A DNA stretch of 63,192 bases, filler included, from Olpidium bornovanus S191 (taxonomy: Eukaryota > Fungi > Olpidiomycota): the NCBI GenBank assembly GCA_017911155.1. It is 26 parts of 26 records of this genome, joined end to end, with 100 filler letters (N's around TTAATTAATTAA, not from the genome) between each part and the next. Parts side by side here need not be neighbours in the genome. Positions count along the whole stretch, not along the records: positions 37,818 to 39,962 come from JAEFCI010013450.1; 25 more parts are not named here. One strand, 5' to 3'. Shown here one piece after another: positions 37,348-39,962 of this stretch (position 1 is the stretch's first letter; every line of letters starts with the position of its first letter). The position numbers and the translations under genes are program-made. The notes beneath the pieces were generated by a model, which was not told the DNA's origin, did no database searches, and was given only the letters and a program-made list of their open reading frames with translations.

Positions 37348-37818
37348 GGCCGCAAAGCGGGGTGTGGGATCGGGTTCCCGGTAGTGACCGGCCCCTCCGT
37401 CTCCCCTAACCCCTCTCCGGATCTGGAAGCCCGAGCGTGCGATCGCTTGCCGTGCTCCTCCGCGTCGCGCTCCTCCTCGCCGTCGTCGTCCTCCACCCTT
37501 CCACGGGGCACCGCGGGGAGCTGCGGCGGCGGCCGGGGGGAGGGGAAAGGGACGGGCGGCGGCGGAGGGAGCAGGCGGAGGGGGTTTTAGACTTTTCATG
37601 GCCATTATTCCGGCGTAACTTCTGACGCTCCGCTGCGTCGGAGTCTTGTCCGTGTCAATGTTCGCAGAGAGATCGAGCAGCCGCGTCCACGGCGGCCGTC
37701 TAAGATTCATCTTGGCGNNNNNNNNNNNNNNNNNNNNNNNNNNNNNNNNNNNNNNNNNNNNTTAATTAATTAANNNNNNNNNNNNNNNNNNNNNNNNNNN
37801 NNNNNNNNNNNNNNNNNC

Positions 37819-38753
37819 ATGACGTTAATACCGCCGCTGTTAGCGCCGGACAATGCCGAGCTCACCAGCCGGTTGATGACCGAGTCGTGGTTGTGGTCTC
37901 AGATCCAGCAGGAGAACGTACGCGGGGCAGCAGGCTGTAAAAGAGCTTATATGAACCGGGGAGGGCGAAAAAATCTCGCCACCGCGTGAAATTTCTTTTT
38001 TATTTATTCAAAAATTTATTTATTTGGCAATCGCCCACTCAAAATCAGATCCTCTTTTTCCAAGCCGATTCGGTCCTGTGCGCGCGATCCGGTCGACGAC
38101 CCGAGGATTTTTTCGAATACGACTATGTGGGTCCCTCTGGCTCCGTGCCGCTGCCAGCGTCCGGCGCGCCGGGAACCGGCGGCCTGAGCATCCGCAAGCG
38201 CTCCCACTCCCTGCGATGCCTCCGCGAGCAACCGCCGGAGGCGGGCGCGGCAGAGGACGTGTATTTCAGCACGACGCTGCCGAGCGTCGGCGGGCGCGTC
38301 GCGCCCCGCGACGTCTCGGCGATGCTCGTCGCGGAGGCCGAACTCGACGCCGAGCCGCTCGGCGTGCACCGGCCGTGGGCGTACAGTTTGCCAGTGGCCA
38401 AATTGGCGAAGCTGTACGAGTACTGTGAGTTTTTGACTGCTGGTGGAGAGAAGGGGATGGAGGGGGACGGGAATTCGGCGTGCGATTTGTTTCTCGGAAC
38501 TTTGTTTTTTTTTTCCTATTTTGACCTCGAGTAGGGGAGAAAAAATTCCACCCCGCTGACGTTCGGTATGCCTCTCTCATTGCGTTCTTCAGGTCCAGTA
38601 CGTTTTCTCCGTTTCCCAGAAACTGGTCAAAATGCTGAGATTTACCCACCCTGTTAACCAATTTGCGCCCTTTTACAGGAGATCGCGCTAACCGGACGGC
38701 AGCCCGGCGACGTCGATCCTTCAATTTACTCGCTGCCAGTTCGGCAGACCTAA
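37819..38753 (+). CDS. DUF5672-like putative glycosyltransferase domain protein, 5'-truncated, includes a 5-nt microexon
   Basis: Exons 37819-37917, 38049-38424, 38593-38597 and 38679-38753 give ILFFQADSVLC..DFFEYDYVG, GTGGLSIRKRS, EDVYFS, PLGVHRPW and YEYCPEI. Confidence 0.75.
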
Positions 38754-38774
38754 AAAAATCTGCGCCCGCGCTTT

Positions 38775-38806
<32 letters not shown>

Positions 38807-38910
38807 ACCCAACCCGCGCAGGCTCACGGAGGCCGCCAAAGCCAACCTACGCAGGCAGGCAGGCGGCCGCTCCTGCCAATCTCGCCGGAACCCCCGCCCC
38901 AGGACCATAT

Positions 38911-39962
38911 ATGGCCGCGGACACGGCCCTGCGCGACCTTCTGCGCAGGCTGGAGCGCGCGCCCGCAGAAGGCCGCGCGCCGTTCAGCCAGCAACAAGAC
39001 GCCCTCCTGGAGGCCATTGCCGGCGATCTGGAAACGGCGGTCGACGCCCTGGACGTCGGGCGCGGCTGCCCCGAAAGCAAACAGGCGGCCGCCTTGCTAG
39101 ACGTGGTCATATCCTTTGGCTGCTCGCCCCCCAGGGTCCCCGGCGTTGTGCTCGAGACTCTCTTCCTTCGCGTCATGGCCTTGACTTCGGTGTCTCGGCC
39201 ATTCTCACTCAACACAGGGCATGTGGTCAGCTCTTTCGCCGCGCCGACCTCGCTCACCATTCCACGCGGGTCCTGTCGCGCCTGGCGACGCGGGAACACG
39301 CCGAAGGCGAGGCGTTCCTTGAGTTCTGTGCGGCCTGCGCGTCGCAGGTCAGTACGCGTTCTACCTCAAGCCGCGATAAGATCCGGCGGTCACAGACAAA
39401 CGCATTACCGAATTCGGAGGGGTGGCCAGAATGAGAAGGTAGACTAACATCCACACGGCCCGTACGGCCAGATCCGCGAGACAGCTCCCAACGCCGTGAG
39501 GTTTGCCGAAGAAGCGATCCTGACCGGGAATTTGAGTCGTATCGCAGAAATATGCGGAGTGAGTCCTGCGTCCGCGTGATAACGCTGCCGTGAAACCGCG
39601 GCGTCACTGATGATATTAGCGGTAGGCGTGCACGCCGTGGTTGGCTCTAGTTCGCCAAAACACTTGCCATATGTCCAACAGTCTCAAAGCAAGGCAAATG
39701 GTTACAGCTTCCCTTGTTCGTCCGACGCCACCAGACTGGGCAGCGGCAGGCCGTGGCACTGAAAATCTGCTGTCCACAATAAGCCTTGGAGCTGTGTCCT
39801 CCGCAGTGGACGTACTGGACTTTGTTCGAGTACGCTGAAATTTGCTTTTCGATAGAAGAGCTCTTCCTACGCCGCTCACGAAGGAGCCGCCCATGCAGCT
39901 GAACCGGAAGGTTGTCGCACCAGACGTGGCTGCATCCAAGGCGATGGACGCCCTGTACCATG
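38911..39962 (+). CDS. Uncharacterised helical (ARM/HEAT-like) protein, 5' part; first intron is a candidate U12 AT-AC intron
   Basis: Exon 1 is 38911-39108 (66 codons) and exon 2 is 39216-39347 (44 codons, ends CAG|GTCAGT). Further probable exons run to the contig end. Confidence 0.6.
39109..39215 (+). other. Candidate U12-type (minor spliceosome) AT-AC intron, 107 nt
   Basis: 5' end ATATCCTTTGG matches the U12 consensus; CCTTGAC at 39179-39185 is branch-like; 3' end CAACAC. Removal joins LLDVV|RACGQLFRRADL in phase 0. Confidence 0.7.

Follow-up and report, generated by a model that had tools for sequence, protein, structure and literature searches.

Does Olpidium bornovanus, a root-infecting zoosporic fungus and obligate root parasite, still remove introns with the minor spliceosome? 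The question is raised by a 107-nt segment at positions 39109-39215 (+ strand) of the window, the whole 63,192-nt stretch of DNA analysed here, which a preliminary description made from the sequence alone had proposed to be a U12-type AT-AC intron. The segment lies on a piece (37818-39962) that is a complete 2145-nt contig of the O. bornovanus assembly (Olpidiomycota), with a G+C content of 60%, and that contains two incomplete + strand genes, the first represented by its 3′ part and the second by its 5′ part. This single contig is the genomic scope of our analysis.

U12-type introns are known in several early-diverging fungi: ~4 in Rhizopus oryzae, ~20 in Phycomyces blakesleeanus, 205 in Rhizophagus irregularis and 249 in Basidiobolus meristosporus, and they also occur in Spizellomyces punctatus and in Neocallimastigomycetes (PMC10639083, PMC2846911). 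Minor introns together with minor snRNAs are known in Chytridiomycota, Neocallimastigomycetes, Zoopagomycota and Mucoromycota, with no convincing case in Ascomycota or Basidiomycota (PMC10639083). Olpidium, an early-diverging fungus, has been placed in a sister position to the non-flagellated fungi (PMC7865070), and therefore stands between lineages that keep minor splicing, so that parsimony predicts a minor spliceosome in this fungus. In the literature searched, we found no paper linking Olpidium with minor splicing, and a supplement of a pan-eukaryotic survey does not list it; minor splicing in this genus thus appears to be previously unreported.

RNA evidence for removal of the segment

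RNA contigs containing this piece occur in nine public runs from three studies, all under one common organism label. RNA was mapped to the whole piece for two runs as assembled contigs (X1 and X2) and for two as raw reads (X19 and X13). The raw-read runs, which share only the common organism label, gave zero reads; they may simply lack Olpidium and provide no test. Assembled contigs can demonstrate that a form is present but not that it is absent, and since depth is given as a mean over the whole contig, no spliced fraction can be derived. In the contigs of both X1 and X2 we find GT-AG joints, which shows that their source was spliced + strand RNA.

The cut itself is found in X2. Record 6 of this run (2129 nt) has the 30 letters 39080-39109 at its start, followed by 39215-39217, and it also carries the GT-AG joints 39347/39472, 39558/39626 and 39829/39899. 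The first joint, at 39107/39215, has two ambiguous letters and can be read in the registers CA..CA, AT..AC or TA..CA; it fits an AT..AC cut at 39108/39216. Two further contigs of the same run are informative: record 4 ends at 39109, while record 5 (39080-39172) runs into the intron and represents the unspliced branch. The 30-letter node 39080-39109, at which all three contigs meet, is the fork expected of a k=31 assembly graph where a splice site is used in part of the molecules, and their meeting there indicates that words spanning the junction were really read. The short 28-letter side of the joint likewise has its cause in the graph, as 28+2 letters equal k-1 for 31-mers. In all, the junction is documented by one assembled contig in one run.

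In X1, record 2 (2395 nt) retains the 107 nt with all three GT-AG introns removed, and the X1 contigs show retention only. Minor introns are known for their slow removal (reviewed in PMC3584512), and retention beside spliced neighbours fits this behaviour. The preliminary description had named the 39108/39216 junction as an RNA check and had regarded transcripts that retain the segment, or that use GT-AG junctions instead, as evidence against an AT-AC intron. The junction is present in the X2 contig; retaining contigs were indeed found in both X1 and X2, in X2 beside a contig spliced at the AT-AC borders, and the contigs of these two runs have no alternative GT-AG junctions. An exact search for the 28-nt spliced junction in JGI metagenome contigs gave no match. 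As a separate observation, the contigs of both RNA runs carry an A>G change at 39295 in exon 2 (GAA to GGA, Glu to Gly), probably a strain difference; A stands at this position in L001, a relative described below.

Gene structure and reading frame

The segment interrupts a gene whose structure could be followed over 38911-39962 (+ strand throughout) and could be compared with a relative from public data, L001, a 980-nt Logan contig (1-980) from SRR10938843 that is ~88% identical to 38840-39806 and keeps all three introns in sequence. L001 represents a second Olpidium-like lineage in public data. The coding part of exon 1 (38911-39108) comprises 198 nt, that is, 66 codons in an open frame from the ATG at 38911, and is covered by RNA contigs; identity to L001 rises from 69% in the 5′ leader to 90% from this ATG onward. 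After the AT-AC intron (39109-39215), which is in phase 0, exon 2 (39216-39347; 132 nt, 44 codons) ends at the donor CAG/GTCAGT of intron 2 (39348-39471), an ordinary GT-AG intron of the form GTCAGT ... GACTAAC ... CAG. It is followed by exon 3 (39472-39558), GT-AG intron 3 (39559-39625), exon 4 (39626-39829), which is based on RNA contigs and frame, and GT-AG intron 4 (39830-39898); the joints of introns 2, 3 and 4 are present in both RNA runs. Exon 5 (39899-39962), also covered by RNA, is ended by the contig edge, and an X1 contig extends ~1.6 kb past the piece.

Excision of 39109-39215 (107 nt, 2 mod 3) joins LLDVV to RACGQLF in one open frame. The frame of exon 2 is open solely after a cut of length 2 mod 3, and the spliced reading stays open over 228 codons, whereas the retained reading stops in exon 3 at the TGA at 39497-39499. 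The preliminary description holds in these particulars: exon 1 ends at codon 66, the segment starts with the proposed 5′ splice site and ends in AC, the motif CCTTGAC lies ~31 nt upstream of that end, and excision joins LLDVV to a 44-codon exon that ends at CAG/GTCAGT.

The encoded protein gave no Pfam or Atlas match. When the 228-residue spliced N-terminus was compared with 1.8 billion representatives in a full HMMER search, just the deposited protein KAG5455392.1 and one Logan ORF, that of L001, were recovered; querying JGI metagenome contigs with a protein pattern from exon 1 yielded no relative. We conclude with good confidence that the AT-AC intron is the first intron of a protein-coding gene of O. 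bornovanus that has no assigned function.

Splice signals and their conservation

The published U12 consensus consists of a 5′ splice site /RTATCCTTT and a branch site UCCUUAAC (PMC2846911, PMC3584512). The bases from 39109 read ATATCCTTTGG, so that the 5′ splice site ATATCCTTT (39109-39117) matches /RTATCCTTT at 9/9 positions. This is the sole occurrence of RTATCCTTT in the window and none was obtained in 100 shuffles (0/100); from base composition we estimate that ~0.01 occurrences would be expected in the 2.1-kb piece on both strands. The best branch-site candidate, GCCTTGAC at 39178-39185, agrees with TCCTTRAY at 7/8 positions, and its core CCTTGAC (39179-39185) agrees with CCTTRAC at 7/7. 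The segment terminates in AC at 39214-39215, as given by the RNA joint. A perfect /RTATCCTTT site together with AT-AC termini characterises U12-dependent splicing, which makes the inference of a minor spliceosome sound.

One feature is atypical. The candidate branch A39184 lies 31 nt from the last intron base, whereas the optimum distance between branch site and 3′ splice site in U12-type introns is 11-13 nt (PMC3584512); the preliminary description had rightly named this spacing as its weak point. The candidate lies outside that optimum and inside the branch windows of two classifiers, -40..-5 (Burge/Sheth; PMC2846911) and -55..-5 (intronIC), and a short distance is typical of the U12 class rather than strictly defining it. 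Motifs nearer the 3′ end (TTCTCAC and ACTCAAC) fit the consensus poorly. Two AC dinucleotides, ending at 39208 and 39213, are closer to the branch candidate and are yet skipped, and the stretch after the branch motif is 67% pyrimidine. Folding of the intron RNA revealed neither a significant nor a conserved structure by which the branch site would be drawn closer to the 3′ end (z ~ -0.9), and an Rfam search of the piece returned just two bacterial sRNA matches at chance level. A small hairpin at 39122-39137 (+), just 3′ of the AT-AC 5′ splice site, can form in both lineages, and one of its pairs is changed on both sides in L001 (C-G to U-A); its energy is not better than that of shuffles, and two sequences make this an anecdote.

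The intron of L001 is of the same length, 107 nt, and has the 5′ site ATATCCTTC. It differs from that of O. bornovanus by 16 substitutions, none of which falls in positions +1 to +8, in a block of 23 nt that includes CCTTGAC or in the last 13 nt. In exon 2, synonymous and non-synonymous codon changes relative to L001 stand at 7:3 in the spliced frame and at 2:8 in each of the other two frames, one of which is the frame imposed by a retained intron; these are small numbers. The read-through ORF of L001 is closed by a stop inside exon 2, and the intron itself has no coding-like substitution pattern in any frame. Small as they are, these comparative numbers all point the same way. Together, the RNA cut in X2, the need of the reading frame and the signals conserved in L001 support the earlier proposal, and we consider it very likely that 39109-39215 is a genuine, spliced minor-class AT-AC intron of the U12 type.

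Alternative explanations

Could the X2 joint have arisen by something other than splicing, such as a template switch of the reverse transcriptase, an assembly artefact or a 107-nt deletion allele in the sampled population? The joint is present in one contig of one run, a short side of 28 letters is a weak kind of joint, and two letters (CA) are repeated at both of its borders. A 2-nt repeat is, however, too short for template switching, the length of the short side is the one dictated by the 31-mer graph, and three contigs share the exact node; moreover, a cut at these borders falls at a perfect U12 5′ site and yields the one open frame, which is also the frame that is under selection. We therefore regard an origin other than splicing as highly improbable. 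A cut by the spliceosome at GT-AG borders would be a different matter, and it is the solution adopted in the deposited model KAG5455392.1, in which a 32-nt intron (39103-39134) is removed and 39135-39215 is coding. The preliminary description had found no usable GT-AG alternative. It was correct that the 28-nt option (39190-39217) runs into a stop, but cuts from 39148, 39172 or 39190 to the AG at 39230 (39148-39230, 39172-39230 and 39190-39230) keep the frame open, as does the deposited one. No such joint is found in the contigs of X1 or X2, though. The six other introns of the piece, at 67-168 nt, are all much longer than 32 nt, KAG5455392.1 also merges two genes whose transcripts are separate, and the coding-like substitutions that a translated 39135-39215 should show are absent in every frame. 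There is scarcely any chance that a GT-AG cut, whether the deposited one or another to 39230, is the true one.

An AT-AC intron may also be removed by the major spliceosome, in which case it would be uninformative on the minor one. The 31-nt branch distance and the 67% pyrimidine stretch give the intron a more U2-like 3′ region. Its 5′ site is nevertheless U12 at 9/9 positions, unlike the GTRAGT or GTACG donors of five neighbouring introns, its branch motif fits the U12 consensus and not the CTRAY motifs of these neighbours, and both the 5′ site and the branch block are conserved in L001; removal as a rare U2-type AT-AC intron thus seems very improbable to us. The attribution to Olpidium deserves more caution. 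The assembly comes from non-axenic zoospore washings of cucumber roots and was obtained by binning on tetranucleotide composition and fungal hits (PMC7865070), the record of the contig carries the label MAG, and the host gene lacks relatives beyond two near copies, all of which would be compatible with a real intron on a contig mis-binned from another root-associated eukaryote. The upstream gene did not help to place the contig: a word-index search with its DUF5672 part matched only itself, and Atlas assigned this part to the DUF5672 family, in mostly viral and bacterial clusters. Against mis-binning, the RNA contigs come from nine runs in three studies under one label, with deep runs of the same label lacking reads, as would fit a parasite of the labelled host, and the neighbouring introns resemble fungal ones in being short and having CTAAC-like branch motifs. 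On balance, we judge a foreign origin of the contig to be unlikely.

Implications for minor splicing in Olpidium and other fungi

With the U12-type reading preferred, a course of removal can be proposed. U11, and then U6atac, would pair with ATATCCTT at the 5′ splice site, and U12 would pair with CCTTGAC, bulging A39184; the cut would be made by the U11/U12 and U4atac/U6atac spliceosome. Removal would presumably be slower than that of the neighbouring GT-AG introns, and the retained form ends at the premature TGA in exon 3. We infer from the intron that O. bornovanus very probably still has minor splicing machinery.

The intron resembles the U12-type introns of early-diverging fungi in kingdom, in its 5′ and branch consensus, in its AT-AC subtype and in being a single minor intron among GT-AG introns; unlike those cases, it belongs to the Olpidiomycota, its branch candidate is 31 nt from the 3′ end, and its host gene has no relatives outside Olpidium-like sequences. 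With the AT-AC U12 introns of animals and plants (PMC3584512) it shares a /ATATCCTTT 5′ site, a TCCTTRAC-like branch motif, the AC end and retention beside removed major introns, and it departs from them in its branch spacing (31 nt against their optimum of 11-13 nt) and in being in phase 0. The terminal dinucleotides are shared with a third group as well. U2-type AT-AC introns are rare introns of the major spliceosome that have neither the ATATCCTT 5′ site nor the U12 branch motif; the Olpidium intron has both.

Two further readings of the unusual features can be entertained, with a single case behind both. The minor spliceosome of Olpidium may tolerate or even prefer a long branch-to-3′ spacing (31 nt), or the intron may be a lineage-specific gain rather than an ancestral relic; such a gain is conceivable because no relatives of the host gene could be detected beyond Olpidium-like sequences. 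Gain of minor introns is held to be extremely rare, and we put forward this pair of readings tentatively, as rather doubtful.

These results provide RNA-supported evidence that a minor-class intron is spliced in Olpidiomycota, which among zoosporic lineages stand closest to the terrestrial fungi. They agree with a scenario in which the minor spliceosome survived the early evolution of fungi and disappeared later, in Dikarya. The general picture is left unchanged, since minor introns had already been found in lineages nearer to Dikarya.

The deposited gene model and the upstream gene

The comparison with RNA also bears on the deposited annotation. KAG5455392.1 (37876-39576, +) is a chimera of two genes, in which the DUF5672 gene is joined to the next gene through the spacer and the 5′ leader. 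Within the first gene the model has another acceptor; it also omits part of an exon, replaces the minor intron by the 32-nt GT-AG intron 39103-39134 followed by 27 invented codons, and at its end reads into intron 3. The fusion, the omitted exon part and the 32-nt intron are all contradicted by the RNA contigs, which show two separate transcripts that break at a poly-C run. As the deposited annotation mishandles AT-AC introns, minor introns of this genome would escape surveys based on annotation.

Two minor features of this region were observed. The poly-C run consists of 30 C (38776-38805) and separates the stop of the DUF5672 gene from the start of the following transcript, with RNA contigs ending on either side of it. 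Within the upstream DUF5672 gene, a micro-exon of 5 nt, GTCCA (38593-38597, +), is flanked by introns at 38425-38592 (GTGAGT..CAG) and 38598-38678 (GTACGT..CAG); GTCCA stands between 38424 and 38679 in the RNA contigs of both runs, and the resulting frame is open to the stop at 38751-38753.
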